A DNA stretch of 64,000 nt, taken from IMG/VR virus record IMGVR_UViG_3300028393_000019, positions 201,681 to 265,680 of that record. One strand, written 5' to 3'. The notes under the pieces are model-generated. The model saw only the letters and a list, made by a program, of their open reading frames with translations, had not been told where the DNA came from and searched no databases. Positions 15,740-62,051 of the stretch are shown in pieces. How positions within the stretch are numbered: the stretch's first letter is position 1; the number at the start of each line of letters is the position of its first letter. A program made the translations under genes and the position numbers.

Positions 15740-16333
15740 TTAAGGCTTCCTTCCTATGATCATGTAACGTGTGTACAGGGGTAATTTCATTTCGCCGCCC
15801 CAAAGAAAATGTAATCCACAAGTTTCCTTAAATTCATCAAATGATTTATGCCACCGCACATGCTCGGGGATATTATAATCATTACTTTGGATAATAATCA
15901 AACTACCGTTAGGCATTCTATCCAACCATTTATCGTATTGTGCTTGTGTTAAGTGTTCACAGCTAGTATTAATAATAATATCTGCAACAGAAATTACATC
16001 GCACATATCTGCCGTATACGCTTTGAACCGACCTTCAATTTCTTCACCCTTGTTCATTAGCGTAGCAATAGGTTCGCAGGTTGGATCAATGTCAATACTG
16101 CGAATAGTAGTAATGGGAATGTTGCTCTGAAATAACATGCTGGCAAGTGTACCAACCCAGCCGCCGAAGATGTCTATGCTAGATGCAAAATGCACATGCT
16201 CATCTAGACAATCAATCAACCATTCTTTGCTTTTTAATTGCCCCGACCAAAAGGCATCCATAGTACGCATAGGGTCCGGGCTTTGACGGATGGCCTGCAT
16301 CCAATGGTGTAAATGGTTTGTATCTATCTGCAT
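15740..16333 (-). CDS. Class I SAM-dependent methyltransferase-like protein
   Basis: IDIFGGWVG, SIDIDP, ADMC, IINTSCEH. Confidence 0.65.
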   Translation of the reverse strand: MQIDTNHLHHWMQAIRQSPDPMRTMDAFWSGQLKSKEWLIDCLDEHVHFASSIDIFGGWVGTLASMLFQSNIPITTIRSIDIDPTCEPIATLMNKGEEIEGRFKAYTADMCDVISVADIIINTSCEHLTQAQYDKWLDRMPNGSLIIIQSNDYNIPEHVRWHKSFDEFKETCGLHFLWGGEMKLPLYTRYMIIGRKP

Positions 16334-17280
16334 TTTGGTATCTTGCTGTCCGCACTACTAACACATCTAGTAGTCACGCATTTTTGTGGCACAGAAAACA
16401 AAGTAAATTTTTCTATCGTGCCCAGTGCGGCTTCGTGGCAACTGTAAGCACGTTTGACTTCCGTACCTTTTATTATAACACTCTGATAACCTGCATTACA
16501 AGTCCAATTGGCAAATTGATTAAACCCCAGTGCATTAAACCGTTCTGCTTGATCTATAAAATAATTTTTATCACCATCCATTAAACGGATTTGATAACCT
16601 TCCTGCTGTTCAAAATCGTTTTGCATTATATCAACCATCTCAGCTGTGTAGCCTTCCACTATGGCGGTGGCACTGTCATTGCTTTGTGGTTTAAGTGTTA
16701 CATTAATTCCACGAGCTCGAAATCGTTCACAGCGTTCTAGTGTTTCAAAGAACAGTTCTGGCACCATAACTTGATTAACAGTTACATGAACCCGCTCGTT
16801 CATTAACTGTAAACACTTGTCACCGAACTCGTGCTCCTTGGCGAACTCTGCATGAAAGCTGGCTGTAATACTGCGGCGCTGTAGACAATCAGTGATGCTA
16901 CACCAGTTTTTCCACCAGCTGGGTCCCGGACTCAAATTGGTAGTCATATGTATACTTTGGTAGGGACTTTCTAATTCATCTATATGTTTGATCAATTCGG
17001 GCAACTGTTTGTACGCAGTAGGTTCACCTCCTGAGAAGCTCCAGTGAAATTGGGTGAATCCGTTCAAACGAGCTTGACGTTTTATCTCGTCGACTGTAGT
17101 CTTATAGACTTCTAAACTTTGGTAATCCAAATTGTCGCTTCGGGCATAGGGCCAACAATAGCTACATTTGTAATTACAAAATCTACCTAGGATCCAACTT
17201 ATGTTAAATAATGGGCGATCCAACATTGTTTGTTGCCCAAAATGCGTTATGTCTTTGAAAGGAATGATTGCGAAGTTCAT
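16324..17280 (-). CDS. Radical SAM protein
   Basis: LGRFCNYKCSYCWP (CxxxCxxC), FSGGEPT; Cys-rich C-terminus. Confidence 0.85.
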   Translation of the reverse strand: MNFAIIPFKDITHFGQQTMLDRPLFNISWILGRFCNYKCSYCWPYARSDNLDYQSLEVYKTTVDEIKRQARLNGFTQFHWSFSGGEPTAYKQLPELIKHIDELESPYQSIHMTTNLSPGPSWWKNWCSITDCLQRRSITASFHAEFAKEHEFGDKCLQLMNERVHVTVNQVMVPELFFETLERCERFRARGINVTLKPQSNDSATAIVEGYTAEMVDIMQNDFEQQEGYQIRLMDGDKNYFIDQAERFNALGFNQFANWTCNAGYQSVIIKGTEVKRAYSCHEAALGTIEKFTLFSVPQKCVTTRCVSSADSKIPKCR

Positions 17281-17314: not shown

Positions 17315-17410
17315 GTAGACGTGAGTGGAACTTGGTATACCTCCAGCTTGCTGGGACTGGGCCTGGCCCTTAGGGTGGCTTTGTAGGTTCGAATCCTACC
17401 GTCTACACCA
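17315..17410 (+). tRNA. tRNA-like RNA (type II/Leu-like body, non-canonical anticodon arm; isotype unassignable)
   Basis: 7-bp acceptor GTAGACG/CGTCTAC + A73 + encoded CCA; T-arm GTAGG TTCGAAT CCTAC; D-loop GG; long variable arm; anticodon arm folds as TCCAG-CTTG-CTGGG. Confidence 0.75.
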
Positions 17411-24923: not shown

Positions 24924-25622
24924 ATGTTTGGAACAAATTATTCAGCTGACGGAATCGTTAGTTATCGTTCGGCAGGCGAAGTCAATCAAGCTATGGGCCG
25001 TGTGTACGGTTACATGGGGCTTGCCACACTGGTAAGTATGCTGGTCAGTTTCTTCGTAGGAACTGATCCAGAACTTGTGAAGTTTTTCTTTACAGGTGCA
25101 ATGCATTGGGTAGTAATTTTTGCCCCACTAGTTGCTGTATTTGGAATTAGCATTGCACTCAACGCTAATCCTCCAAAAGAAACTGCTGTACTATTGTTGG
25201 CAGGCTTTGCGGCCATTATGGGATTGAGCTTTGCTGTAATCTTTGCTGTCTATACTATGGCTAGTATCTTTAGTGCGTTCATGGGTGCCAGTGTGTTGTT
25301 TGGAACTATGAGCTTCTATGGATACTTTACCAAGAAAGATTTGGACAGTCTAGGTAAGTTTATGTTTGTGGGATTGATTGCTATTATCATTGCCAGCATT
25401 ATCAATATCTTTATCGGTAGCTCAGTAATGCAGATGGTTATCTCAGCCCTGGCTATCGTAATCTTCATGGGTCTAACTGCTTACGACACACAGCAGATTC
25501 GTGAAATGGTCAGTACCGATTCTAGCCCTGCCGCAGAAGTGATAGGTGCGTTAACTCTGTACTTGGATTTTATCAATATCTTCCTCAGTTTGCTACAGTT
25601 GTTCGGAGACAAGAAAGACTAA
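24924..25622 (+). CDS. Bax inhibitor-1/YccA family membrane protein
   Basis: About 7 TM segments; LTAYDTQQI, ALTLYLDFINIFLSLL. Confidence 0.9.
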   Translation: MFGTNYSADGIVSYRSAGEVNQAMGRVYGYMGLATLVSMLVSFFVGTDPELVKFFFTGAMHWVVIFAPLVAVFGISIALNANPPKETAVLLLAGFAAIMGLSFAVIFAVYTMASIFSAFMGASVLFGTMSFYGYFTKKDLDSLGKFMFVGLIAIIIASIINIFIGSSVMQMVISALAIVIFMGLTAYDTQQIREMVSTDSSPAAEVIGALTLYLDFINIFLSLLQLFGDKKD

Positions 25623-26360: not shown

Positions 26361-26734
26361 CCAATCCATTTAGAGATCAAGAAAAGTTTATGAAAGCCTG
26401 TGATCAAGTCGCAGGTGGTGAGTTTAATCGAGATCAGTTTGCAATGTATCTCAGACTCATTGAAGAAGAATACAAAGAGCTTTGGGAAGCTGTCAACAAC
26501 AATAATCAGTTAGAAACGTTAGATGCACTTATAGATATTCTAGTAGTCACTATCGGTGCCATTCATAGTACAGGTAGCGATGCCGAGGGTGCATGGAAAG
26601 AAGTTATGCGCACTAACTTTGCCAAGATCGATCACGAAACAGGCAAGGTGCGCAAGCGTGAAGACGGCAAGGTTCTAAAGCCAATTGGCTGGACTCCGCC
26701 AGAATTAAAACAATTTATTAAGGAACAATTATGA
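26357..26734 (+). CDS. MazG-like/all-alpha NTP pyrophosphohydrolase
   Basis: LIEEEYKEL, ETLDALIDIL, EVMRTNFAK, DGKVLKP. Confidence 0.75.
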   Translation: MTNPFRDQEKFMKACDQVAGGEFNRDQFAMYLRLIEEEYKELWEAVNNNNQLETLDALIDILVVTIGAIHSTGSDAEGAWKEVMRTNFAKIDHETGKVRKREDGKVLKPIGWTPPELKQFIKEQL

Positions 26735-27258
26735 CACAACTAGTACCAAATGTAACATTTGCATTTCGCCAAGGCGATCTAGCACCCGAGGGCGGTGGTT
26801 GCCCAATCGGTGGAGAATTTGTATTCAAGACTACAGCAGAGCTGTTTGACAACAAGCGAGTAGTGGTATTCAGCTTGCCGGGAGCATTTACCCCAACTTG
26901 TTCAACATACCAACTACCCGGCTTTGAAGAGCAGTATGAAGACTTTAGAGCACAAGGTATTGATGATATCTATTGTGTCAGTGTTAATGATGCGTTCGTT
27001 ATGAACGAGTGGGCTCGTAGTTTGAACATTCAAAATGTACATCCTATTCCAGACGGAGCAGGAGTGTTTACAGAAGGTATGGGCATGTTGATAGATATGA
27101 GTGCAATTGGTTTTGGAAAACGCAGTCGCCGTTATGCGGCCATCATCGATAATGGGCAAGTACAGCACATGTTCATCGAACCCGAAGCTAGCGACACTGA
27201 TCCAGATCCCTACGGCGTATCAAGCCCAGAAAACGTAATGAAGCATCTTAAAGGATAA
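26731..27258 (+). CDS. Peroxiredoxin (Prx5-like)
   Basis: [28 protein letters not shown]. Confidence 0.9.
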
Positions 27259-27260
27259 AA

Positions 27261-27851
27261 ATGCCAAACCTAGTACCAATGGTGATCGAGCAAGAAGCTC
27301 GTGGAGAACGTAGTTATGATATTTACAGTCGCTTGCTCAAGGACCGTATTGTTATGCTGGACACAGATGTTAATGAACATTCGGCAAGTTTGCTGGTAGC
27401 ACAGCTACTATTTTTGGAGAGTCAAGGAAATGAAGACATTACTTTTTTCATCAATAGTCCTGGGGGTGTGGTTACTGCCGGCATGGCTATCTATGACACA
27501 ATGCAATTTATTAAACCAGACGTCTGTACCGTCGTTATGGGTCAGGCTTGCAGTATGGGTTCCTTGCTCGCTACTGCTGGGGCTCCTGGCAAACGCAAAA
27601 TGCTTCCAAACGCTCGCCACATGATTCACCAGCCAAGCGGTGGTGCAGGTGGACAAGCTACAGACATGGAAATCCAAGTAAACGAAATCATTAAAATGAA
27701 AAAGAACTTGACCCAAATTTATGTAGACCATAACAGCAAGGGCAAGACGTTTGAGCAGTTCCACTCTGCTATGGAACGTGATAACTTTATGAGTGCGCAA
27801 GAAGCACTAGATTTTGGATTAATTGACGAGATCATAACAAAACGCCCATAA
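27261..27851 (+). CDS. clpP: ATP-dependent Clp protease proteolytic subunit
   Basis: [25 protein letters not shown] (Ser), HQP (His), ERD (Asp). Confidence 0.95.
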
Positions 27852-30256: not shown

Positions 30257-31089
30257 GATCACACTATTGGACATGTTCGAAATTTGCAGACTGGTTACGT
30301 GGCACACCAAAACCAGGAGCCCAAACCAGTGAAGGCTGGGATGAGTGGACTGAAAAAGCCAAGTCAGCACATCCTGTTCGTTGGTGGATTGCCGAAGAAG
30401 GATTAGATCACCTTCAAAAATTTGTTTATTATATTCCGGATCGACTAAATGACATACGCTATTATATTAACAATCGCTGGGTTAGTTACAGCCATGCTCT
30501 TACCGCACATCCTCGAGACATACAACCGGGTAACTGGAGTGATGTTGGCAATCGCTTTCTTCCTTGTATGTTCAATGAGCTTGTGGACTTTGTTGAAATA
30601 GAACAAGCATGGCATCACTGCATGTGGAGTGATGAAGCCAAAACCAAATTTGATGTGCCTTGGTGGCGCAGTGGCTGGCTACGTTTGCGTACATGGCGCA
30701 ATGCCGAAGCAGGTATGGAATATCTCAAATGGGCTAGCGAGCTTGTCGTTGGTGAAGACATGGGTGCTACTCCTGGGGACAAAGGATTCGGCGAGCCCAC
30801 CTATCAAGCCAAATCCGCTAAAGAAATCATCGAGCTTTACACTTGGTGGACTGTTACATATCGCAATCGTCCTGACCCATACGAAGCAAGTGGCTGGACT
30901 GCGGCATGCGAAGCCAGTCGTTTGGCCAACGGTGGCCGACTGAGTTTCAGCGGTGAGAAAGATCCTACACTTAAAAAAGCCAGCGACAAGGCTCACAAGC
31001 TACTTCAAAAGATTGAAAAGGCTTATGAAGCAGAAGACGAAGCTATGATGATTCGCCTTATCAAAATCCGTCAGAGTCTATGGACATAA
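30253..31089 (+). CDS. Conserved phage hypothetical protein (Trp-rich)
   Basis: 278-aa ORF, operon-coupled. Confidence 0.65.
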   Translation: MRSHYWTCSKFADWLRGTPKPGAQTSEGWDEWTEKAKSAHPVRWWIAEEGLDHLQKFVYYIPDRLNDIRYYINNRWVSYSHALTAHPRDIQPGNWSDVGNRFLPCMFNELVDFVEIEQAWHHCMWSDEAKTKFDVPWWRSGWLRLRTWRNAEAGMEYLKWASELVVGEDMGATPGDKGFGEPTYQAKSAKEIIELYTWWTVTYRNRPDPYEASGWTAACEASRLANGGRLSFSGEKDPTLKKASDKAHKLLQKIEKAYEAEDEAMMIRLIKIRQSLWT

Positions 31090-32441
31090 ACAAGTTTAGA
31101 GATGAACTTAATAGTGTCAGTCCATCATTTTGTGCCGCTAAGTGGAAGCAGGTAACGCTTCATCTCCAAACTGGGCATAACCATAGTTGCCATCATCCGG
31201 CACCTCACAAGATACCGTTAGAAGAACTGTCAGCCAATCCATCAGCGTTACACAATACCAAGTTTAAAAAACTACAACGTAAGATGATGCTGAGTGGCGA
31301 ACGTCCGGCAGAGTGTGACTACTGCTGGCGTGTTGAAGACAACAGTAACTCACTAAGTGATAGAATTTTTAAAAGTGCCGACAAGTGGGCGGCACCTCAT
31401 ATTCAAGACATAGCCAGTAAACCCTGGGACCATGATGTTGTACCCAGCTACGTAGAAGTTAGCTTTGGTAATGTGTGTAATTTTAAATGCAGTTATTGTG
31501 CGCCCAATGTCAGCTCACGTTGGATGGAAGAAATTGAAAAGTTTGGACCATATCCCACATCGGGCAAGTTCAACAACCTGGAGTGGCTGAAACAAACAGA
31601 TCAGATGCCCATACCACACAAGGACGACAATCCCTATGTTGATGCATTTTGGGAATGGTGGCCTACTGCTTATCGTGAGCTAGAGCATTTTCGTATCACT
31701 GGCGGTGAACCTTTACTGAACAAAAATACATTTAAGATTCTAGATTACATAATTGCTAATCCCAATCCAAACTTGGACTTTAGTATTAATGCCAACATGT
31801 GTCCACCGAGTGACATACTAGATAAGTTTATTGAAAAGATTAAACTGTTGGAAGGCAAAGTAAAAAGATTCAAAATCTTTACTAGTGCAGAGGCATATGG
31901 CGCTCAGGCAGAGTATATACGCAATGGTATGGACTATGCTCAATGGATCGATAATATTGAACGTGTGCTAAAAGAAGTACCAAGTGTAGGGTTTACAATC
32001 ATGAGCACCTACAATGCCCTAAGCGTTCCCAGCTATACCAAATTCTTGCAAGATGTATTGAGACTCAAAACACAATATTACAAACCAGAATATAAGCAAA
32101 CTGCTGTACTATTAGACATACCGTATCTGCGGTGGCCTCCACATCAGTCAATCTTTATTCTAACAAAGGACTTTGCCACAACAATCAAAGAGCATGTGGA
32201 CTTTGTGCAGTCTTATGCAGAAGGCACTGCAACAGAAACATACCAAGGATTTGATCGTCTTGAAGTCGAACGTATGAAACGAATATACGAAATATTTCAA
32301 TCACACGATGAACCAGATACTGTAAAGAATCAAAAAGACTTTGTAGCGTTTGTTGACGAGCATGATCGCAGACGTGGCACAAACTTCTCGGCTACATTTC
32401 CCGAGATGGTAAAATTTTACAATTACTGTCAACAGCTATGA
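31080..32441 (+). CDS. Radical SAM protein with N-terminal Twitch/SPASM-like Cys cluster
   Basis: FCAAKW...SCHH...ECDYCWRVE; GNVCNFKCSYC; ITGGEPLL. Confidence 0.85.
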   Translation: MDINKFRDELNSVSPSFCAAKWKQVTLHLQTGHNHSCHHPAPHKIPLEELSANPSALHNTKFKKLQRKMMLSGERPAECDYCWRVEDNSNSLSDRIFKSADKWAAPHIQDIASKPWDHDVVPSYVEVSFGNVCNFKCSYCAPNVSSRWMEEIEKFGPYPTSGKFNNLEWLKQTDQMPIPHKDDNPYVDAFWEWWPTAYRELEHFRITGGEPLLNKNTFKILDYIIANPNPNLDFSINANMCPPSDILDKFIEKIKLLEGKVKRFKIFTSAEAYGAQAEYIRNGMDYAQWIDNIERVLKEVPSVGFTIMSTYNALSVPSYTKFLQDVLRLKTQYYKPEYKQTAVLLDIPYLRWPPHQSIFILTKDFATTIKEHVDFVQSYAEGTATETYQGFDRLEVERMKRIYEIFQSHDEPDTVKNQKDFVAFVDEHDRRRGTNFSATFPEMVKFYNYCQQL

Positions 32442-33855: not shown

Positions 33856-34401
33856 ATGAATTACAAAGACAGTAACTGGCAAACAGTAGACACAGCATAT
33901 CTAAATACCTTTGGTAAAGAAGTCCCTGTGTACTCGCCTGCTGTTTATAGAGAGTACAGGGGAGAGATATTTACTACCTATCATTCTACTGCGCACCCTG
34001 TTAACCAAATATTACCAAACGATGTGCAAGTTCATACTAGATTTTCAAAATCATATCAAGGTGTACTGCGTGGACTACACTATGATGACAAAACTTGGAA
34101 GCTGGTTCAAGCTCTAGTCGGCGATATCTATCTAGTAGTGCTTGATGTAAGACAAGACAGCGATACATTTGGCAAATGGGAATCTTACATCATAAGTGAA
34201 AAGACCAGAGACCAAGTACTGGTACCCCCGGGATTTGCTAACGGGCACTATGCACTGACAGATTGCATTTTTCACTACAGCCTATTTTATCAAGGCGACT
34301 ATGTTAATGAAAATAATCAGGGTGTAATAAAATGGAATGACCCGGCTTACAATATAGAATGGCCTACTAAAGATCCTATAATACAAGGGCGTGACAAATG
34401 A
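33856..34401 (+). CDS. rmlC: dTDP-4-dehydrorhamnose 3,5-epimerase family
   Basis: RGEIF, GVLRGLHY, KLVQ, VLDVR, VPPGFANGH, IKWNDP. Confidence 0.85.
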   Translation: MNYKDSNWQTVDTAYLNTFGKEVPVYSPAVYREYRGEIFTTYHSTAHPVNQILPNDVQVHTRFSKSYQGVLRGLHYDDKTWKLVQALVGDIYLVVLDVRQDSDTFGKWESYIISEKTRDQVLVPPGFANGHYALTDCIFHYSLFYQGDYVNENNQGVIKWNDPAYNIEWPTKDPIIQGRDK

Positions 34402-35027
34402 TAACTAATTTAGACCAGTATCCCGTCGTGCGAGATATCGATCATACACCAGATAGTTTGATCAAGTTTGAAGATTCGATCATAGCTCTATGGGAAGGTG
34501 CTCGAGTTCGAGGACCTATACACTTGTCAAACGGCAATGAACACAGTTTGATCGAAATATTTAAACGTGTTAATACAACTGATTGGGTGTTCAGTACCTG
34601 GCGCAGTCATTATCATGCACTGCTTAAAGGCCTAGATCCTCAATGGATAACTGCAGAAATTCTCAAAGGAAAGTCAATTAGTATTTGCAATGTTGATGAA
34701 AAATTTTACAGCAGTGCCATAGTTGGCGGAACACTGCCCGTTGCACTGGGTGTTGCTCAGCAAATCAAACGTGCAGGTTCTACAGATAAAGTATGGTGCT
34801 TTATTGGTGACATGAGTTTTGAAAGCGGTATATTCTACGAGATACACAAGTATGCTAGAAACTTTGATTTACCATTATACTTTGTAGTGGAAGACAATGC
34901 AGTATCAACATATACTCCAACAGATACCACATGGAATGGTAAACGTAGCGTACCCCATGATGTAGTACACTACCATTACAAATCTAAGTATCCGCATTAC
35001 GGCACAGGCAAATGGATAGTATTCTAA
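34398..35027 (+). CDS. TPP-dependent dehydrogenase E1 alpha-like subunit (short)
   Basis: HLSNGNE, STWRSHYHAL, SAIVGGTLPVALGVA, GDMS...VEDN TPP motif variant. Confidence 0.8.
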   Translation: MITNLDQYPVVRDIDHTPDSLIKFEDSIIALWEGARVRGPIHLSNGNEHSLIEIFKRVNTTDWVFSTWRSHYHALLKGLDPQWITAEILKGKSISICNVDEKFYSSAIVGGTLPVALGVAQQIKRAGSTDKVWCFIGDMSFESGIFYEIHKYARNFDLPLYFVVEDNAVSTYTPTDTTWNGKRSVPHDVVHYHYKSKYPHYGTGKWIVF

Positions 35028-36370
35028 AAATAGTTTATGACAATTGGTATCAATCTGTACCGCTGTCCAACGGACTTCATCCCATACTGGCCAATCATAT
35101 CAAAAGTTCTATACCAAGTATCGATTCTGTAGAAAGTACAGCTACTAGTCTAATGAATAGTGACATGTTCCCATTCAGGTGGCATAACAACTTTTTTAAA
35201 TATTTTAAAAATCATGCTATGGTTGATCCGGATCAAATTGTGGACGATGCTGATATCTACATCTACCCGATTGAAATACGCACTTCACTAAATTCACTAT
35301 TTCAAGATCACTCATTTAACATAGGAGGAAATAGTTGTACTTACAATATCAGCGATACCATCTCCCCCAAAGTGTTAAACCATCTGCGATCTGGCAAAGT
35401 AAAACTGGTTATAAATTACATTCATGATCCTGTCTCCAACGAAGAAGACCTACTGAAGTTTGATTCATTATTGCAATCAATAGGTATTAACGGCAAGAAT
35501 GTAATAGTAGTTGCGGGAAACGAATTCGCTGTGTCTGGTTGTAGTATAAGAGTAGTTGGTGGACCTTTGTTATTTCCTAGAGAAGATGCTGAAAGAATAA
35601 CATCAAGGCCTCGACCAGGTCGACTTGGCTACATGAACGATTTTGTCAAACAGCATGAGTTGAATCCTGATAAAATACGCCCTCACAAATTCATGTGCTT
35701 CAATAGACAATTAAGTAATCGCGCACACAGAATATCACTGGCATACCTAGCATTGAAATACAATCTGCTAGATCATAATGTGTTCAGTTTCCTTGAACAG
35801 ATAACTGAGCGACAGGTGCTGGACAGTTCCAGGGCGTGGAGTACCTATTACAAAGATGTAGACCTGTCAGAAATGGCTAGACAAATTGTAAAGATACTGC
35901 CTTGGGAAGTTGACACGCATCTTTTGAGTCAGTCTGAAAAAACTAACTTTTCAACACACAACAACAAAAAAGAACTTTATCTCAACACTTATATTCATAT
36001 TGTATCTGAAACAAGATTTCACGATGGTGATAGTCCCTTTATGTCGGAAAAGACATATAGGCCTATAGCAAACTTTCAACCGTTTTTATATGTAGGTAAT
36101 TATAATTCTTTGAAAGACCTGCATGAATTAGGGTTTAGAACATTTCATCCTTATATTAACGAGGAATACGATCTTGAACAAGATCCCGAATTGCGCATGG
36201 CGCTGATAGAACACGAATTAAAAAAATTAAATGATTTAACACTTGAACAAATTCACGAATTGTATTTTAGTGTAAAAGATATATTGATCCATAATCGAAA
36301 CCATCTGACTACATTTATCAATGCACAACCTTACCAAAATTTAATAAGAGACCTTCAACATGGAATTTAA
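35012..36370 (+). CDS. Putative glycosyltransferase-like protein (paralog of 32438-33847)
   Basis: IVSET...MSEKTYRP...QPFL...LHELGFRTF...NEEYD block. Confidence 0.5.
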   Translation: MDSILKIVYDNWYQSVPLSNGLHPILANHIKSSIPSIDSVESTATSLMNSDMFPFRWHNNFFKYFKNHAMVDPDQIVDDADIYIYPIEIRTSLNSLFQDHSFNIGGNSCTYNISDTISPKVLNHLRSGKVKLVINYIHDPVSNEEDLLKFDSLLQSIGINGKNVIVVAGNEFAVSGCSIRVVGGPLLFPREDAERITSRPRPGRLGYMNDFVKQHELNPDKIRPHKFMCFNRQLSNRAHRISLAYLALKYNLLDHNVFSFLEQITERQVLDSSRAWSTYYKDVDLSEMARQIVKILPWEVDTHLLSQSEKTNFSTHNNKKELYLNTYIHIVSETRFHDGDSPFMSEKTYRPIANFQPFLYVGNYNSLKDLHELGFRTFHPYINEEYDLEQDPELRMALIEHELKKLNDLTLEQIHELYFSVKDILIHNRNHLTTFINAQPYQNLIRDLQHGI

Positions 36371-37343
36371 AAATAAAAATATAGTCGTTACAGGTGCCAA
36401 CGGACTAGTGGGATTACCTGCGGTTCGCAAGTGCTTAGAAGAAGGTGCTCATGCAGTTTATGCAGTGGACATTAATATAGGAGAAGGATTGATTTCCTTA
36501 AGAGAACAATACTCTAATCTAATACTGGTAATGAAAGACCTAACATATTTGGACAACTGCGAGTCACTGTTTGAAGAACAACCGATTGATATTGTACTGC
36601 ATATTGCAGGAATAAAAGGATCGCCAGCACGTAGTAGCAAACAACCTGCAGACTACTTGTTTCCTATGTTGATGTTCAATACCAACATGATCAAGGCCGC
36701 ATTTGATGCCAAGGTCGGTTGGTTTGTTTATCTTTCAAGTGTAGGTGTTTACCAACCTACAGAGATCATGCGTGAAGAAGATGTATGGGTCACTGTGCCC
36801 AGTAAGAATGATTGGTATCCGGGGTGGACCAAACGTATGGGTGAAGCTACATTAGAAAGCCTACAAGTACAGTATGGATGGGACAACTGGACTGTGATAC
36901 GTCCCAGCAACATCTACGGACTCAATGACAACTTTGCACAAGACGCTACTGTGATCAGTAGCAACGTCTGGAAGTTGTACAACGTTGAGGGCAAAGATAT
37001 AGTGTGTTGGGGTAACGGCAGTGCAAGGCGTGACTTTGTGTTCGGCGATGATGTTGCACAGGCTAGTGTTGATGTGGTCAAGAAAGAAGTAAAAGATATT
37101 ATCAACTTTGGTTGTGCAGAAGCCATCACTATCAAAGAAACCATTGAGACTATAGTTGACTGCTATAAAGAAATATCAGGTGAAACTAAGAACATTGTCT
37201 GGGACGAAACAAAAATGAATGGAGATCCTGTTCGTTGTCTAAGTCCAGATCGTCAAAAGAAATACGGTATACTTCCGCAAACAACCTTGCGTGATGGTAT
37301 CAAGCAGACCATCCTAGCATACAAACAAAGGTTAGGCCAATGA
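36360..37343 (+). CDS. NDP-sugar epimerase/reductase (GDP-fucose synthase-like extended SDR)
   Basis: VTGANGLVG, LSSVGVY, PGWTK, RPSNIYG, WGNGSARRDF. Confidence 0.8.
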   Translation: MEFKNKNIVVTGANGLVGLPAVRKCLEEGAHAVYAVDINIGEGLISLREQYSNLILVMKDLTYLDNCESLFEEQPIDIVLHIAGIKGSPARSSKQPADYLFPMLMFNTNMIKAAFDAKVGWFVYLSSVGVYQPTEIMREEDVWVTVPSKNDWYPGWTKRMGEATLESLQVQYGWDNWTVIRPSNIYGLNDNFAQDATVISSNVWKLYNVEGKDIVCWGNGSARRDFVFGDDVAQASVDVVKKEVKDIINFGCAEAITIKETIETIVDCYKEISGETKNIVWDETKMNGDPVRCLSPDRQKKYGILPQTTLRDGIKQTILAYKQRLGQ

Positions 37344-38332
37344 AAACTACAGATAAGATTTTGGTAACAGGGGCAAGCGGATTCATTGGCTCCAATGTGC
37401 TTCGAGTGCTGTATCAACAAGGGTTCACTAATCTACGTGCTAGCACACTACAGAGAGGCTTACGGAATGACTTTAACGGATCGGAAACTATCGAACTAGT
37501 TAAGGGTGATCTGCGTGATGCAGACTTTGCTAAATTTGTGTCGCAAGACATTGATGTGGTAATACACTGCGCGGCTAACACTAGTAATGCACTGGATACT
37601 AAGTTCAATCCGTTATTACATGTTACTCCCAATGTTGAGATGAATAACAACATAATGGAACAAAGCTGGAAGAACAAGGTGCGTAAATTTATCTTTATCA
37701 GCACAGCAAACGTCAATGGCGACCTTGGTTCAGTGTATGCTGTAGAAGACGCCAACTTTATGAACTTGCCGCTAGTACCTGTGTACAAAGCAGTGGGTGC
37801 TATGAAACGCTTTGGCGAGATGATGTGCGACTTCTTTAGTAATCAAATACATGATCCAATGCAGTGCGTCATTATTCGTCCAAGCAACGCATTTGGGCCC
37901 AATGACAAGTATGACTTTGAGAAATGCCATGTTACACCTGCAAACATTCGCAAAGTGGCGGACAGGCTGAATCCAATTCCTGTTTGGGGTGATGGTACAG
38001 AAATACGTGATGTGCTACACGCAGACGACATGGCCGGAGGCATTGTGTATGTTGCAGAGCATGTGGACACCTATGATATCTACAATGTGTGCTACGGTCA
38101 AGGCTACAGCGTTAACCAATTACTTGAGTGGATGAAAGAAGCCGACGGCAATACTAACCCAATTGAGTACGTTAACAATCGAGCACCTATGATTCCAGTT
38201 CGTCTAGTATCTAGTGAAAAGATTAATGCGCTAGGCTGGAAACCAAAGCGTGAGATTAAACAAGCACTAAAGGATACTATCGAATGGTATCGTGCGCACA
38301 AAGAACAATTTGATCCAAATAGCAAGCCATGA
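37340..38332 (+). CDS. NDP-sugar epimerase/reductase (GDP-fucose synthase-like)
   Basis: VTGASGFIG, RPSNAFGPND, HVTPA.IRK, WGDGTEIRD. Confidence 0.8.
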   Translation: MKTTDKILVTGASGFIGSNVLRVLYQQGFTNLRASTLQRGLRNDFNGSETIELVKGDLRDADFAKFVSQDIDVVIHCAANTSNALDTKFNPLLHVTPNVEMNNNIMEQSWKNKVRKFIFISTANVNGDLGSVYAVEDANFMNLPLVPVYKAVGAMKRFGEMMCDFFSNQIHDPMQCVIIRPSNAFGPNDKYDFEKCHVTPANIRKVADRLNPIPVWGDGTEIRDVLHADDMAGGIVYVAEHVDTYDIYNVCYGQGYSVNQLLEWMKEADGNTNPIEYVNNRAPMIPVRLVSSEKINALGWKPKREIKQALKDTIEWYRAHKEQFDPNSKP

Positions 38333-39267
38333 AGCGAGTACTAATCACAGGCGGTGCTGGCTACCTAGGCTCTACACTAGCTGAACATTTACTAACACAG
38401 GGCTACAGTGTAACTGTATTTGATAACTTGTTGTACAAACAGTTATCCTTGTTGCATCTATTTAACAGACAGGGCTTTAAATTTGTCTTAGGTGATGTTA
38501 GAGATACTAGACAACTACAGGCATTGGTTAAAGAACATGATATCATTATTCCCCTAGCCGCAATCGTGGGAATGCCTGCTTGCCGAGCCAATCCCGAACT
38601 GGCCAGAGATGTAAACTACAAGCATATAAGATACATAGTGGAAGTACTGGCCAGTGATCAAAAGCTGATCATTCCCAACACCAACAGCCAATACGGATCA
38701 AGTGACGAAATCATTACCGAAGATAGTCCATTCAAACCTTTGAGTTTATATGCCGAAACCAAATGCGATGCAGAAGATGCTGTGCTGTATCATGGCAACG
38801 GTGTTGCACTAAGACTGGCCACAGTGTTTGGTGTCAGTCCACGTATGCGTCAAGACTTGCTGGTAAATGACTTTGTTTATAAAGCAGTTACTGATGGATA
38901 CTTGGTATTGTTTGAAGCGCACTTTAAACGCAATTACATTCATGTACAGGACATTGCCCAAACGTTTCAGTTTATAATTGAAAACTACGACCAGTGTCGA
39001 GGGCAGGCTTATAATGTAGGATTGTCTACTGCTAACCTAAGCAAGCTGGAACTTGCAGAGTGCATTAAAAAGTATGTGCCTAAACTGGCAATCAAGCAGG
39101 ACGAGTTTGCCAAAGACTTTGATCAGCGCAATTACATAGTGAGCAATGCCAAATTGGAAGCATTAGGATGGAATCCCACTTTTAGTTTAGACTACGGCAT
39201 TGAACAACTAATTACAGCATATCAGATGACAATAGTCCACAACAACCGGAACTTTACAAACCTATGA
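38329..39267 (+). CDS. NAD-dependent epimerase/dehydratase
   Basis: ITGGAGYLG, YAETK, LRLATVFGVSPRMRQDLLVN. Confidence 0.85.
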   Translation: MKRVLITGGAGYLGSTLAEHLLTQGYSVTVFDNLLYKQLSLLHLFNRQGFKFVLGDVRDTRQLQALVKEHDIIIPLAAIVGMPACRANPELARDVNYKHIRYIVEVLASDQKLIIPNTNSQYGSSDEIITEDSPFKPLSLYAETKCDAEDAVLYHGNGVALRLATVFGVSPRMRQDLLVNDFVYKAVTDGYLVLFEAHFKRNYIHVQDIAQTFQFIIENYDQCRGQAYNVGLSTANLSKLELAECIKKYVPKLAIKQDEFAKDFDQRNYIVSNAKLEALGWNPTFSLDYGIEQLITAYQMTIVHNNRNFTNL

Positions 39268-39710
39268 CCGAACGCAGATACCTACAGACATTTAGCGAGC
39301 TGATCGATAGATTGAGCATCGTACAGCTTAAAGAAGTATTCATTACAGATTACAAAAAAGAGTACGGTGAAGAGATCGCCGATATCGTGCATGACATACA
39401 GTTGATTATGGACCAGCATCCGGATGCCAAAGTGGATGCAGAAACTATTCGAGCCATTGTGGTGTTGGCTCAAATGAACTTGCATATTTGGCACAACGAA
39501 TCAAACTACCGCAGAGGAATCAAAGACGGCAACAATTTGGAATTGACACACGGCTTGAACGGAATCCGCAACACTAGCAAAAATATCATTCAAGAAGTTG
39601 TGGGCGGACGCAAAGACTACAAAGTTGATTGTTTGGCTGCAGACTTCCAGGGTTGGGAAATCAGCTGGAACAAAGATGTTTCACAAGACAACAAGCCATC
39701 AGTGCCATGA
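39264..39710 (+). CDS. Hypothetical protein in sugar cluster
   Basis: 148 aa, TFSELIDRLSIVQLK; coupled on both sides. Confidence 0.6.
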   Translation: MTERRYLQTFSELIDRLSIVQLKEVFITDYKKEYGEEIADIVHDIQLIMDQHPDAKVDAETIRAIVVLAQMNLHIWHNESNYRRGIKDGNNLELTHGLNGIRNTSKNIIQEVVGGRKDYKVDCLAADFQGWEISWNKDVSQDNKPSVP

Positions 39711-40246
39711 CCAAACCACAAACATCAATTTACAAAGACGCTTTGACTGAAGCTATGACCTATTTGGGTGAGCAAATCGATACTGTATTCATTGGACAGC
39801 AGATTGTGTATCCGGGTAACCCGATGAGTACTACTTTAGTAAACGTAGCCAAAGACAAGATGATCGAAGTTCCAGTAATGGAAGAAACACAAATGGGCAT
39901 GAGTTTGGGCATGAGTATGATGGGCCAAACTGTGATCAGCTTTTATCCTCGCTGGAACTTTTTGATCTGCGCGGCTAATCAATTGATCAATCATGTGGAC
40001 AAGTACGAGGAAATGACTGGCAAACAAGCCAATATAATCATTCGAGTGGCCAAAGGTGCAGACGAGCCGTTGGATCCGGGTCCACAGCACAAAGCCAATT
40101 TCATTGCAGAGTTTACCAGCATGTGTCCAAATACTCGATTTTACGATCTAAAATCTGCAGATAGCATTTTGGACACTTATAAAAATGCTTACAAAACGGG
40201 CGGAATCCACATTGTGGCAGAATACCCACAGTTATATATTGCTTGA
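39707..40246 (+). CDS. TPP-dependent E1 beta/transketolase pyrimidine-binding subunit (short)
   Basis: ATG at 39707; EVPVMEETQMGMSLG, PRWNF, NQLINH, PGPQH. Confidence 0.8.
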   Translation: MTKPQTSIYKDALTEAMTYLGEQIDTVFIGQQIVYPGNPMSTTLVNVAKDKMIEVPVMEETQMGMSLGMSMMGQTVISFYPRWNFLICAANQLINHVDKYEEMTGKQANIIIRVAKGADEPLDPGPQHKANFIAEFTSMCPNTRFYDLKSADSILDTYKNAYKTGGIHIVAEYPQLYIA

Positions 40247-43812: not shown

Positions 43813-45264
43813 ATGGCCCAACTATTAAATGTAACAGAAGACGGCACCGTCATAATGGACAAAGTAGCCCTGAAATACACATCAGGGAGCATAATCCATT
43901 CTGGAAGTCTTGAAGTAATCAACTCTGTACAGATCGACAACAATCTAGTTGTTGCTGGAACCATCACGGCCGACACGTTCAATGTTAAGAATTTAATCAC
44001 AGAAAACGGCAGTCTAGCATCTGTAGGCAATTGGATTTACAACTCAGAAGCTGAACTAAACGGCAAAGGTTTTACCTGGAGCTGGGGTACTGGACAAACA
44101 CAACTGGTGTATCGTTCGGGTAGCAGAATTTGGGCCAACGCTAGTTTTGACATCACAGCAGAATCCAGTTACCGTATTGACAACATTGCTGTGCTTACCA
44201 GTAACAGTTTGGGTGCCACTATTACCAACAGTAGCCTGACCAGTATAGGCACTCTAAATTCACTTGCAGTGTCCGGCAGTAGCACATTTGCAGACTTTGT
44301 TTACATTGACAGCGACAGTAATAGAATTGGTATAGGCACACCCGAGCCCAACAGTTCGCTCAGTATTTTAGACAACAACGTGGAACTCACTATAGGCAGT
44401 CCGCAGATCAGTCTAGGTGCCATTGGTACACACAGCAGTCACGATCTTGCTATTGTTACAGACAATATTCCACGTATCACAGTCAAGAATATGGGCGAAG
44501 TGCAGATAGGCAACGCTCAAAGCAACGGTGCTGTGCTACGTGTTTACGGTACTATCTATGCTGATCGTATCGAATCAGCTGGCAGCACAGGCATACCAAA
44601 AAGCGTAGAATTCGTATCCACGCAAGAATCCAGTATGTTTGGTACAGGTCTAGTATGGACCAGTGGTGCTTTATCACATCAGTTGGTCATGATGGATCAT
44701 CCTCGCAGACTTTGGACTACAGAAAACTTTGATCTTGACAAAGATCGCTCGTATCATATCAACGGTGAAGTGGCCCTTAGCGCCGGCACCCTGGGATCAT
44801 CTATCACTATCAGCAATTTGACCAAATTAGGCATACTGAGTGATCTGCACGTGAGCGGTCCTGCAGTGGTAAAATCAATCACAGCTGGATCTCTAACAGT
44901 GGATAACACAGTGTATGGATCCGGTGGCTTCTCATATGAAGGACAACCAGTGATCACAGCCTATGGCAATCAAACTATCATAGGCAATAGAGATGTACAA
45001 ACTGCTCCGGTCAAGATATTTGGACCGTTGAGCGTGAATGTAAACAATCCAGAACCGGGTGTACAGTTCAGCGTCAACGGTGATGTCAGTATCGGCGGCA
45101 AAAAGTTTACCAATGGTATAGGTGTTCCAAGTAGTGGTACATTTACACAGGGCGACATTTGCTGGAACATAGGACCGCAGCCAGGCGGATATGCGGGTTG
45201 GATTTGTACAGCCAGTGGAACCCCAGGAGCATGGGCGCCGTTTGGATTGATTGCTAGCCAATAG
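43813..45264 (+). CDS. Virion/tail-fibre-like protein with internal repeat
   Basis: 483 aa; two copies of G..W..G....QLV......W....FD.....SY.I....L....LG..IT.S.LT..G.L..L.VSG; C-terminal GDICWN..P.PGGYAGWIC...GTPG.W. Confidence 0.65.
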   Translation: MAQLLNVTEDGTVIMDKVALKYTSGSIIHSGSLEVINSVQIDNNLVVAGTITADTFNVKNLITENGSLASVGNWIYNSEAELNGKGFTWSWGTGQTQLVYRSGSRIWANASFDITAESSYRIDNIAVLTSNSLGATITNSSLTSIGTLNSLAVSGSSTFADFVYIDSDSNRIGIGTPEPNSSLSILDNNVELTIGSPQISLGAIGTHSSHDLAIVTDNIPRITVKNMGEVQIGNAQSNGAVLRVYGTIYADRIESAGSTGIPKSVEFVSTQESSMFGTGLVWTSGALSHQLVMMDHPRRLWTTENFDLDKDRSYHINGEVALSAGTLGSSITISNLTKLGILSDLHVSGPAVVKSITAGSLTVDNTVYGSGGFSYEGQPVITAYGNQTIIGNRDVQTAPVKIFGPLSVNVNNPEPGVQFSVNGDVSIGGKKFTNGIGVPSSGTFTQGDICWNIGPQPGGYAGWICTASGTPGAWAPFGLIASQ

Positions 45265-45266
45265 AG

Positions 45267-45294
45267 TTGACCTTTACAGTTAAATCTGTATAAT
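45267..45294 (+). promoter_or_regulatory. Sigma70-type promoter for the queD operon
   Basis: TTGACC-N16-TATAAT; predicted +1 near 45301. Confidence 0.6.
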
Positions 45295-45300
45295 TACTAT

Positions 45301-45373
45301 ATGCGGACTTAGGCATTCATCCCGCAATATAAACTCTGCATGCCATTGCTTAATCAAGGAGATTACAATGGCA
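45301..45373 (+). ncRNA. Candidate cis-regulatory RNA (riboswitch-like pseudoknot/sequestration switch) in the queD leader
   Basis: P1 TGCGG/CCGCA, loop GGCAT pairs with ATGCC (pseudoknot), mutually exclusive with a 13-bp hairpin TGCCATTG+TAATC/GATTA+CAATGGCA covering the start codon. Confidence 0.6.
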
Positions 45374-45853
45374 AAATTTTACTCAACAAAAACTTACGGA
45401 AACGACCGCGGCTTATCATGCTGTTTTAGACAATGGCGTGCCACACACAGCCACTGCTCGACACTACATGGTTACTCAATCGGCATCAAGCTAATCTTTG
45501 AATGCGATACACTAGATGACAAAAACTGGTGTATGGACTTTGGTGGGCTTAAAGAATTTAAAGCGTGGGCAGACTATATGTTTGATCACACGTTAGTAAT
45601 CGCAGAAGATGATCCTCACTTAGAAACATTCCAAAAACTAAATGCAATTAAGGGCGGTTTTGAAGACAGCGGAATATGTGATCTACGCATTGTGCCCGGA
45701 GTAGGCTGTGAAATGTTTGCTAAAATAGCCTACGATAAAATGGCTGAACTTTTGGCAAGTGGTGATATGCGTTATCCAATTAATCCAACAGTAAGAATCA
45801 AATCGGTCGAGGTGTTCGAACATGGCGCAAATTCGGCTACCTACGAAGGTTGA
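45368..45853 (+). CDS. queD: 6-pyruvoyl-tetrahydropterin/6-carboxytetrahydropterin synthase family
   Basis: HSHCSTLHGY, DFGGLK, DHT, GCEMFA, VEVFEHGANSATY. Confidence 0.8.
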   Translation: MAKFYSTKTYGNDRGLSCCFRQWRATHSHCSTLHGYSIGIKLIFECDTLDDKNWCMDFGGLKEFKAWADYMFDHTLVIAEDDPHLETFQKLNAIKGGFEDSGICDLRIVPGVGCEMFAKIAYDKMAELLASGDMRYPINPTVRIKSVEVFEHGANSATYEG

Positions 45854-46067
45854 TTTTTATATTGAGTGGCTCGCTACTGTATCATTTTTATGTTCAGTGG
45901 CGTTGACCTCTCTTAACTACTATCCAACTTATCTATATATCAGTCTATTAACCAATGTACTTTGGTTAATAGTAGGTATTATCTGGCGCAAATGGTCGCT
46001 CATAACAGTTGAATTTGTCGTCTGTTTCATGTATACTATAGGTATTATAAACTACTGGCTACACTAA
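45822..46067 (+). CDS. Small 3-TM membrane protein
   Basis: 81 aa with three hydrophobic helices; start uncertain. Confidence 0.55.
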   Translation: MAQIRLPTKVDFYIEWLATVSFLCSVALTSLNYYPTYLYISLLTNVLWLIVGIIWRKWSLITVEFVVCFMYTIGIINYWLH

Positions 46068-47092
46068 TGAAACGTCTCGGCTTTGCCTGCAAGTGGATCG
46101 ATCGTCCAGATCAAGTGGACGGTATCAGTCCAAAAGACGATGCAAAAAAATACAACACTGGTTCGACTACAGTTTCTTGGTTAAATAGACAATCGAGAGA
46201 TCAAGCGGAACAAAAGTTATGGGACCTAATGGTAGGCAATATCGAGGCAACTCGAAAGTTGGTAGAACGTGTCAGCACACTTGACCCTCATCTTAGGATG
46301 GTTAGGATTAGCAGTGACATTCTCCCTGTTTATACTCACGCTGACTTTGCTGATTATTGGCGTAAACCTGACGTGGTTTCATACGCCGAAACCGCGTTTA
46401 AAAGAGTGGGCGATCTTGCTCGCAATAGCAATGTTCGGTTGTCTATGCATCCTGGGCAGTTTACTGTCCTGGCAAGCGATAACCCAGGCATTGTCGAACG
46501 CTCAATCGCAGAGTTCGAATATCACACAGACATGGCCCGCTGGATGGGCTATGGAAAGTCGTTTCAAGACTTTAAAATCAATGTACACATATCAGGTAAA
46601 CAAGGTCCCGAAGGTATCAGACGAGCCTACGGAAAACTAACACCCGAAGCTCGAAACTGTATTACAATCGAAAACGAAGAAAACTCATGGGGGCTAGATG
46701 ATTGTCTCACTATTAGCGATATTATACCTATTGTTCTTGACGTTCATCATTTTTGGATTCGAGAAGGAAGTTACTTAGATCCTAGCGATATCCGAGTTAC
46801 ACGGGTTGTTGACAGCTGGCGCGGCCTTCGTCCTACTATGCATTACTCCATATCAAGAGAAGACTATCTTGTTGGACACGATCCAATGGTTCCACCAGAC
46901 CATAAACAGCTTCTTTTAGACGGTTACAAAAAGCAAAAGCTCAGAGCCCACTCTGACTTTTATTGGAATACAAAAGTTAGTGAATGGGCCTTGAGCTTTT
47001 TAGAAACACACGATATTATGTGCGAATCTAAGGGTAAGAACTTGGCTAGCTTTGCTCTATACGAGCAAGCTAAACTACTTAAACTGCTTTAG
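46067..47092 (+). CDS. uvsE: UV DNA damage endonuclease (UvsE/UVDE)
   Basis: RISSDILP, RLSMHPGQF.VL.S, INVHISG, ITIENEE, VLDVHH, TMHYS, RAHSD, IMCESKGK. Confidence 0.9.
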   Translation: MKRLGFACKWIDRPDQVDGISPKDDAKKYNTGSTTVSWLNRQSRDQAEQKLWDLMVGNIEATRKLVERVSTLDPHLRMVRISSDILPVYTHADFADYWRKPDVVSYAETAFKRVGDLARNSNVRLSMHPGQFTVLASDNPGIVERSIAEFEYHTDMARWMGYGKSFQDFKINVHISGKQGPEGIRRAYGKLTPEARNCITIENEENSWGLDDCLTISDIIPIVLDVHHFWIREGSYLDPSDIRVTRVVDSWRGLRPTMHYSISREDYLVGHDPMVPPDHKQLLLDGYKKQKLRAHSDFYWNTKVSEWALSFLETHDIMCESKGKNLASFALYEQAKLLKLL

Positions 47093-47294
47093 GCTTACGT
47101 GGAGCACGTGGCTTTTTAACAGCTGGTGCTTTCTTAGCCGCTGGCTTTTTCTTAGCTGGTGCCATAGATTCTACAACTGCTTGTGTAGCTTGTTCAGCAA
47201 CTGCTGTAGGTGCAGGAGTTTCCACTTTATAAGGAACTTCTGCTTCTACTGCTTTAGGCTTAATACCAAATAGTTTTTTAATGTGATGTAACAT
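47079..47294 (-). CDS. Small protein with histone H1-like Lys/Ala/Pro tail
   Basis: ATG 47294 after AGGAG; ends PAKKKPAAKKAPAVKKPRAPRKPKAV. Confidence 0.65.
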   Translation of the reverse strand: MLHHIKKLFGIKPKAVEAEVPYKVETPAPTAVAEQATQAVVESMAPAKKKPAAKKAPAVKKPRAPRKPKAV

Positions 47295-47314
47295 AGTTAA
47301 ATCTCCTAGTCCAA

Positions 47315-47329
47315 TATTTATAATAAATA
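47315..47329. promoter_or_regulatory. Back-to-back late promoter cores
   Basis: TATTTA 47315-47320 and TAAATA 47324-47329. Confidence 0.6.
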
Positions 47330-47334
47330 TCATT

Positions 47335-47895
47335 ATGTATAACTTTATTAGGTACGTTAGTTTAAATGAGGGCTACTCTCCCAAAACATTGGAGCAATCT
47401 CCCTTGCCATACGCCAAGGATGATTTAGAGCCAGTCAAAAGTGAAGATACTATAAACTATCATTATGGAACACTGTACAAAGGATATGTAGATCGCTACA
47501 ACAAAGGTGAAGGAGATCCCGACTTCAACGAAGCAGGTGCTTTTTTACATGACATTTATTTCAAACAGTTTCATAAACCCACAGGTAACAATCATCCCGA
47601 TCACATAGCTTTGAATTTTATCAACAAACACTTTAAGACTTTTGAAAATTTCCGAGACAAAGTGCAAAAGTCAGCTATGGGTATACAGGGGTCTGGTTGG
47701 GTATACCTGGCTCGTGATGGGTCAATCAAAACTATCAAGAATCATGAGATTCGAATGGATATCATACTGCTGATTGACTGGTGGGAACATGCTTGGGCTT
47801 TGGATTATCAAGCTGACAAAAAAGCCTACTTGCGAAACATCTACAAAATAATCAACTGGAATGTGATTGGCTCTAGAGTTGGTCGAGTGTCTTAA
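47335..47895 (+). CDS. sod: Fe/Mn superoxide dismutase
   Basis: LPYAKDDLEP, TINYHY, FLHDIYF, GSGWVYL, IDWWEHAW; all four metal ligands present. Confidence 0.85.
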   Translation: MYNFIRYVSLNEGYSPKTLEQSPLPYAKDDLEPVKSEDTINYHYGTLYKGYVDRYNKGEGDPDFNEAGAFLHDIYFKQFHKPTGNNHPDHIALNFINKHFKTFENFRDKVQKSAMGIQGSGWVYLARDGSIKTIKNHEIRMDIILLIDWWEHAWALDYQADKKAYLRNIYKIINWNVIGSRVGRVS

Positions 47896-48160
47896 GACTG
47901 CTGGCCGGCATTGACCATACTTTTCTAGCTTCCACGCCCTTGAGCTGGGCAAACTTTTTAGCGTCACAATCACCACACACATGGTATACATTGTTGCTTA
48001 GTCGCTTGGGATCCATTGATCCCCTATCTCGTGTAAACACTTCCTGACAACAGTCGCATCTGAACACAAGTACTTGCTTTTCTCGCACATAGGTGTGAGT
48101 AAATCCCCGATTACTGGTTCTTACATAGTGGTTTTGTCGCTGTTCTGTTCTGATATACAT
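47873..48160 (-). CDS. Zn-finger-like hypothetical protein
   Basis: ATG at 48160; FRCDCC...HVCGDC. Confidence 0.6.
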   Translation of the reverse strand: MYIRTEQRQNHYVRTSNRGFTHTYVREKQVLVFRCDCCQEVFTRDRGSMDPKRLSNNVYHVCGDCDAKKFAQLKGVEARKVWSMPASSLKTLDQL

Positions 48161-48165
48161 TAATG

Positions 48166-48201
48166 TATTTACATTAAGGTTATAAAATTCTATGCTAAAT
48201 A
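48166..48201. promoter_or_regulatory. Back-to-back late promoter cores
   Basis: TATTTA 48166-48171 and TAAATA 48196-48201. Confidence 0.55.
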
Positions 48202-48218
48202 TTACAACAAGGGACAAC

Positions 48219-48542
48219 ATGATCACTATTTCTGCTTCGGCCAAGACTAAAATTAAAGATTTGATCTACGAAGAGGGCAATCCTAACCTAGCACTGCGTA
48301 CATTTGTACAGGGCGGCGGGTGTAGCGGATTCAGCTATGGCTTCACATTCGATGAAATAGCAAATGAAGATGATTTTACAATTCCCTTAGACGAATTTCG
48401 AGTACTTGTAGATGCAATGAGTATGCAGTATCTTACAGGTGCAGAGATAGATTATAAAGAAGATTTACAGGGCAGTTCATTCAGCATAAAGAATCCCAAC
48501 GCACAAACAACATGCGGTTGCGGTTCTAGCTTTGGAGTTTAA
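48219..48542 (+). CDS. erpA: A-type Fe-S cluster carrier (ErpA/IscA/HesB)
   Basis: [40 protein letters not shown]. Confidence 0.92.
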
Positions 48543-48545
48543 TAA

Positions 48546-62051
<13,506 letters not shown>

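Follow-up and report, generated by a model that had tools for sequence, protein, structure and literature searches.

What controls the queD gene of a large, uncultured phage? In the 64,000-nucleotide stretch of IMG/VR record IMGVR_UViG_3300028393_000019 that we analysed (hereafter the window), a QueD-like gene is preceded by a 67-nt leader (45301-45367) that a first-pass annotation described as a two-state RNA switch: an H-type pseudoknot reminiscent of preQ1-I riboswitches, competing with a hairpin that buries the start codon. We asked whether this element is real, how far it extends beyond a single genome, and what it might sense. All features discussed below lie on the (+) strand.

A recurrent leader in front of phage queD genes

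The 103-nt gap between the stop codon of a virion-protein-like ORF (43813-45264) and the ATG of the queD-like ORF (45368-45853) contains a near-consensus sigma-70-type promoter (45267-45294), with TTGACC at 45267-72, a 16-nt spacer and TATAAT at 45289-94. It matches 11 of 12 consensus positions and is the best site in 5 kb; the predicted transcription start, inferred from it, is at about 45301. The 161-aa product is recognized by Pfam PTPS (1e-15) but reaches only 35 bits with the QueD equivalog TIGR03367, below its cut-off of 89, and carries a C-x3-HGY motif in place of the canonical C-x3-HGH: it is best called a QueD-like 6-carboxytetrahydropterin/6-pyruvoyltetrahydropterin synthase. It is about 50% identical to the QueD of cultured phages such as Iggy and the Rhizobium phages. 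The window itself belongs to a large phage genome, with dense co-directional ORFs, virion protein and DNA ligase PHROG hits, many auxiliary genes and a 4416-aa ORF; the same QueD lies on a 265-kb IMG/VR contig.

The unconstrained minimum free energy (MFE) fold of the leader consists of the helix P1 and a 13-bp hairpin over the ribosome-binding site, at -19.6 kcal/mol (z = -2.2). With 5 of 200 shuffled sequences folding as well, this is only modest evidence on its own, and the comparative data are much stronger.

A search of IMG/VR with the QueD protein gave 344 relatives. Among the best 80 (79-100% identity), 77 show the same leader upstream, and in the three exceptions queD lies directly behind another ORF. 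A DNA pattern taken from the conserved core matched once in the window, and 118 of 120 pattern hits in IMG/VR are full copies with P1. A covariance model built on 140 distinct aptamers finds exactly one copy in the window (67 bits, the next hit scoring 8.9 bits) and exactly one in each of 100 loci covering 913 kb, with no second copy in front of another gene. A second retrieval, started from a QueD subfamily only 31% identical to the protein of the window, found the leader in about 38 of 79 loci, namely those at 60% identity or more to that query; these copies are more diverged. In total, the motif occurs in more than 200 IMG/VR phage contigs.

The association with queD is strict. Of 117 downstream ORFs called in the pattern-retrieved set, 115 are PTPS/QueD-like, and the apparent exceptions have one extra ORF between the motif and queD. 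Interestingly, the QueD-like proteins fall into at least six subfamilies that are 29-50% identical to each other, while the RNA core is nearly invariant. Most of these proteins carry C-x3-HGY and score below the QueD cut-off. They are about 50-69% identical to the QueD annotated in cultured phages of Pseudomonas, Rhizobium, Cellulophaga, Flavobacterium and Acidovorax, several of which, Iggy for example, probably carry 7-deazaguanine DNA modifications. A QueE-like radical-SAM gene follows queD in 36-40 loci, and FolE lies within a few kb in 44. Other neighbours are heterogeneous: UvdE, SOD, HesB, KdsA and epimerases. No QueC or DpdA was recognized in the stretches examined, including by a PP-loop scan for QueC near the motif. 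No other 7-deazaguanine gene was found among about 56 ORFs scanned in the window, and a QueE query did not return the contig of the window among its best 80.

In what was searched, the motif is confined to phages. BLAST of two leaders against GenBank phages gave only chance hits, and the queD loci of the three cultured phages inspected, ACP17, X1 and BCSR5, have no leader space and no covariance model hit. A pattern scan of GTDB genomes returned only two real copies, both on short contigs binned into MAGs and both followed by queD; the other hits are consistent with the roughly 140 expected by chance.

Architecture of the pseudoknot

P1 pairs UGCGG (45302-06) with CCGCA (45322-26). It is 99.4% paired in 140 distinct sequences, with compensatory changes in four of its five pairs (AU109/UA27, GC128/CG9/UA2, CG105/AU26/UA8 and GC137/CG3). 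The top pair, to which G45306 contributes, is G-C in 139 of 140 sequences and, in a separate count, in 80 of 80.

The second helix, P2, was annotated at first pass as GGCAU (45312-16) with AUGCC (45340-44). It is in fact longer: its 5' strand GGCAUUCA (45312-45319) faces the 3' strand UGCAUGCC (45337-45344), so that C45318-G45338 and A45319-U45337 pair beyond a U45317·C45339 mismatch, and L2 is correspondingly shorter than proposed. In a fixed register on the MAFFT and covariance model alignments, P2 reached only 75-76% pairing because of gap placement. The diverged copies revealed the correct register: wherever the A of the closing pair is G, the U is C, as observed in six loci representing at least four lineages. 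Anchored on that closing pair and counted outward from the P1 junction, 171 distinct sequences give A-U 165, G-C 6 and unpaired 0 at position 0; C-G in 171 at position 1; and the U·C mismatch in 168 at position 2. Positions 3-7 are 87, 89, 88, 79 and 75% paired, with 4-6 pair types each, and the helix ends at positions 8-9 (40% and 35%). Permuting the 3' strands lowers pairing at positions 3-7 from 83.5% to 51.5 +/- 1.9%, with a maximum of 57.9% in 1000 permutations. By contrast, a third helix proposed at first pass (45301-07/45335-41) exists in this sequence but shows no covariation, being 70.8% paired against 70.0% in shuffles.

L1 (45307-45311, ACUUA) varies in length (2-13 nt) and begins N-C-U in 168 of 171 sequences, its first position being variable (A/U/C) and its second the invariant C45308; up to 10 mostly pyrimidine nucleotides follow. 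L2 (45320-45321, UC) is 2 nt long in 164 of 171 (UC 148, AC 8, CC 8) and always ends in C, placing the invariant C45321 immediately 5' of the P1 3' strand. L3 (45327-45336, AUAUAAACUC) is A-rich and 10 nt long in 166 of 171, with a W-U-A-N-A-A-A-Y-U-C consensus that includes three invariant adenines (45329, 45331 and 45333) and ends in an invariant UC. Importantly, the invariant unpaired positions also hold in the 47 sequences retrieved through the protein alone, so the search pattern did not create them.

Expression platforms and the inferred direction of switching

In the window, positions 45341-44 of the P2 3' strand are shared with the sequestering hairpin (45341..45373), formed by UGCCAUUG (45341-48) with CAAUGGCA (45366-73) and by UAAUC (45351-55) with GAUUA (45361-65). 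The Shine-Dalgarno sequence (SD; AAGGAG, 45356-61) lies in its loop and stem, and the AUG (45368-70) is paired. The hairpin is worth -13.5 kcal/mol; giving UGCC to P2 costs 10.9 kcal/mol, whereas the P2 duplex returns about -6 kcal/mol. The ligand-free ground state should therefore be OFF, and a typical ligand binding energy could tip it ON.

At least four platform designs follow the aptamer with the same logic. Type A, that of the window (UGCCAUUG...CAAUGGCA), buries the AUG; type B (CCUAUG...CAUAGG) buries the SD; type C (GUCAUC...GAUGGC) buries the AUG; and there are several others. In 157 of 159 distinct leaders, at least 3 of the first 7 nt after UCUGC pair into the -14..+6 window around the start codon in the MFE fold of the platform. 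Holding the first 5 nt unpaired, as in P2, raises the mean energy from -8.9 to -3.9 kcal/mol. The same statistic is 53% when those nucleotides are shuffled and 85% when they are swapped among leaders; its baseline is therefore high, and the convergence of different designs is the stronger argument.

The aptamer starts at the predicted 5' end of the transcript under two different promoter types. In type-A leaders the TATAAT ends 7 nt before P1 in 29 of 38 cases, and TTGAC is present in 31 of 38; in type-B leaders a T4-late-like TAAATA lies 4-11 nt before P1 in 48 of 62.

Relation to preQ1 riboswitches and possible ligands

The type I preQ1-I riboswitch (e.g. Carnobacterium antarcticum; Rfam RF00522) is the closest known system. 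As described in PMC11625349 and PMC8752633, preQ1-I is an H-type pseudoknot with a strictly conserved specificity cytosine immediately before the P1 3' strand, preceded by U in type I and by A in types II/III. It has a conserved G-C pocket floor, U6 (plus U7 in type I) in L1, an A-rich L3 whose A30 (plus C31 in type I) precedes the P2 3' strand and, in type I, a C8·A12-U32 ceiling. The phage motif has the knot with a 5-bp P1, the UC, the G-C floor, an A-rich L3, a C directly before the P2 3' strand, an A-U pair at the P1-proximal end of P2 and the invariant C in L1, and it likewise precedes 7-deazaguanine biosynthesis genes. However, the equivalents of U6/U7, which contact the ligand, are replaced by N-C-U, and two extra nucleotides (Y-U) separate the last invariant adenine of L3 from the following C. 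L2 is only 2 nt because UCA is drawn into P2, and P2 has 8 positions with a conserved U·C mismatch. The SD is not part of P2 but lies, with the AUG, 12-30 nt downstream, and the inferred logic is ON rather than OFF. No relevant Rfam model matched in a permissive scan (E <= 10) of the region and of 12 diverse loci, nor at the gathering threshold in the whole window. The first-pass statement that the preQ1-I consensus is not matched is thus only half right: no covariance model matches, but several pocket hallmarks do. We do not file the motif as a member of RF00522.

Types II and III (B. subtilis, T. tengcongensis, E. coli) share the overall fold, the specificity C and the G-C floor, and 8 of 171 phage copies have their AC before the P1 3' strand; their ceiling, L1 and L3 differ, and they bury the SD in P2 or form a terminator. 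The preQ1-II and preQ1-III riboswitches (RF01054, RF02680) are also pseudoknots and may sense the same family of ligands, but they have the HLout topology with an embedded hairpin and a different pocket, whereas the covarying helices here define a plain H-type knot.

We propose that the leader is a translational ON riboswitch with a preQ1-I-like (type I-like) aptamer, a reading to which we give a probability of about 0.5 and which agrees with the first-pass interpretation. Without ligand, the P2 3' strand would pair with the AUG/SD region and block ribosome binding; a ligand bound between P1 and P2 would lock that strand into the pseudoknot, melt the base of the sequestering helix and allow translation of the QueD-like enzyme. 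Ligand binding, ligand identity and the direction of regulation in vivo are all inferred. The retained C, floor and ceiling point to a planar ligand with a guanine-like pairing face, most likely a 7-deazaguanine such as preQ1, preQ0 or CDG, read by the invariant C. Against this reading stand the missing U6/U7, the longer L3, the absence of an Rfam match, the high baseline of the platform statistic, the lack of the leader in cultured phages with related QueD genes, and the unusual logic of a biosynthetic gene activated by its end product.

It is possible, although less likely, that the fold and the ON logic are the same but that the ligand is the QueD substrate or a related pterin (7,8-dihydroneopterin triphosphate, CPH4), or guanine/GTP. 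QueD would then be made when its precursor accumulates, or when guanine is released by DNA base exchange. ON logic fits activation by a precursor better than feedback from an end product; the motif controls only queD, the enzyme that consumes the FolE product; and the replaced U6/U7, the longer L3 and P2 and the U·C mismatch point to a remodelled pocket. Pterins and guanine would be expected to present the same pairing face to a cytosine. On the other hand, five or six pocket hallmarks of preQ1-I are retained, no known pterin or guanine riboswitch uses this fold, and the proposal is entirely inferential.

A protein-binding translational operator, bound by QueD itself or another phage protein, is doubtful. 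Many of these phages look T4-like, judging from the TAAATA box and from the closest cultured QueD, found in the T4-like Acidovorax phage ACP17, and the T4 gene 32 leader, whose 5' pseudoknot is probably bound by gp32, offers a plausible precedent. That pseudoknot appears to have no preQ1-like pocket signature, and no sequence relationship was seen. However, autoregulation by QueD proteins only 29-50% identical would need a very conserved surface, and the invariant single-stranded nucleotides sit exactly at the positions that form the small-molecule pocket in preQ1-I.

A structured leader without a sensing role, protecting the 5' end, setting a fixed translation level or acting as a thermometer, would be in line with the modest z-score and with how common such hairpins are; it is improbable, since at least 13 invariant unpaired nucleotides and two covarying helices competing with a third, a competition preserved by at least four platform designs, are not needed for simple stability. 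OFF logic is the least likely: although all characterised preQ1 riboswitches are OFF switches and a 9-bp remnant of the hairpin could persist and stack on P2 in the window, P2 formation leaves only a 4-bp A/U-rich remnant and frees the SD in type-B leaders, and frees the AUG in type-C and other leaders.

More tentatively, this may be a phage-specific riboswitch class that reuses the preQ1-I fold with a remodelled pocket and senses a 7-deazaguanine-pathway metabolite other than preQ1, such as CDG, preQ0 or the pterin substrate H2NTP. It would then be the first riboswitch dedicated to a DNA-hypermodification (anti-restriction) pathway, and the first ON member or ligand-specificity variant of the preQ1 family.

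Phages replace guanine in their DNA with 7-deazaguanines to escape restriction, yet nothing is known about how they regulate that pathway, and we found no paper in the literature searched that links a riboswitch to phage queD or 7-deazaguanine genes. The element described here would be a metabolite-sensing RNA, widespread in uncultured, often jumbo, phages, that controls the QueD step. If confirmed, it would provide a compact, roughly 45-nt ON aptamer for structural and synthetic biology, and show that the smallest known riboswitch fold has a natural ON-type relative, possibly with a different ligand specificity. It would also show that phages monitor a small-molecule pool to time or dose their DNA-modification enzymes.

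Gene content around queD

The genes following queD in the window (45822-48542, + strand) encode DUF6552, whose gene overlaps the end of queD by 32 nt, the UV endonuclease UvdE, an Fe/Mn superoxide dismutase (SOD) and a HesB/IscA-type Fe-S protein. Together, they form a block with a flavour of damage and oxidative stress; the same UvdE/SOD/HesB clusters follow queD in many related loci. Directly downstream of the queD-UvdE-SOD-HesB block starts a single ORF of 4416 aa (48546-61796, + strand).

The window is also rich in auxiliary genes, located at 7620-9185, 11145-12296 (- strand), 14242-15399, 16327-17280 (- strand), 24924-25619, 26731-27848, 31080-32438 and 33856-40243. They include a tryptophan-halogenase-like protein, a class-III aminotransferase, three radical-SAM proteins, Bax1-I, a peroxiredoxin, ClpP, dTDP-sugar epimerases and dehydratases, and split E1/transketolase-like pieces. 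In addition, ARAGORN calls a tRNA-Pro(GGG) at 17315-17410 (+ strand); at 96 nt it is unusually long for a tRNA, and it may contain an insertion or intron, or be a false call.

The regulated PTPS proteins

In the window and across all loci, nearly all of the regulated PTPS proteins have HGY in place of the zinc-binding HGH of QueD, usually with an extra His two residues before the Cys (S-H-C). Their chemistry may differ from that of bacterial QueD. Interestingly, in one of the retrieved loci (L262, 6200-7240, - strand) a single leader controls two tandem PTPS genes: a canonical QueD (C-x3-HGH, TIGR03367 at 80 bits), followed by the phage C-x3-HGY type. This suggests that the two paralogues are not redundant.

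Outlier aptamers and copies in MAGs

Three of the retrieved loci carry outlier aptamers. That of L397 (1427-1478), on a 350-kb contig, has a much less A-rich L3 (ACGAAUCC) but keeps P1, P2 and UCUGC, while in L357 (1429-1473) and L352 L3 is shortened to 7 nt. These are potentially useful natural variants for defining the pocket.

The only motif copies found in the genome collection, L127 (CAIJZG010000002.1, a 5.5-kb contig of a 'Bacteroidetes' MAG) and L178, are on short contigs binned into MAGs, and each carries the phage queD. They are probably phage DNA that was binned along with the MAG, rather than bacterial copies.

Promoters of the leader

In type-B leaders, in which the sequestering helix buries the SD, the loop of the anti-SD hairpin reads UGCUAUAAU (TGCTATAAT), a perfect extended -10 box, as exemplified by loci L010 (2960-2995) and L036 (2355-2395). 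An internal promoter at this position would give a transcript without the aptamer, although it is uncertain whether the match reflects chance or a second, unregulated start.

Upstream of P1, in loci L201-L320 and in the window, two promoter types drive the same aptamer. Type-A leaders, the design found in the window, have sigma-70-like TTGAC/TATAAT, and type-B leaders have a T4-late-like TAAATA 4-11 nt before P1. The switch may therefore act at different infection stages in different phages.
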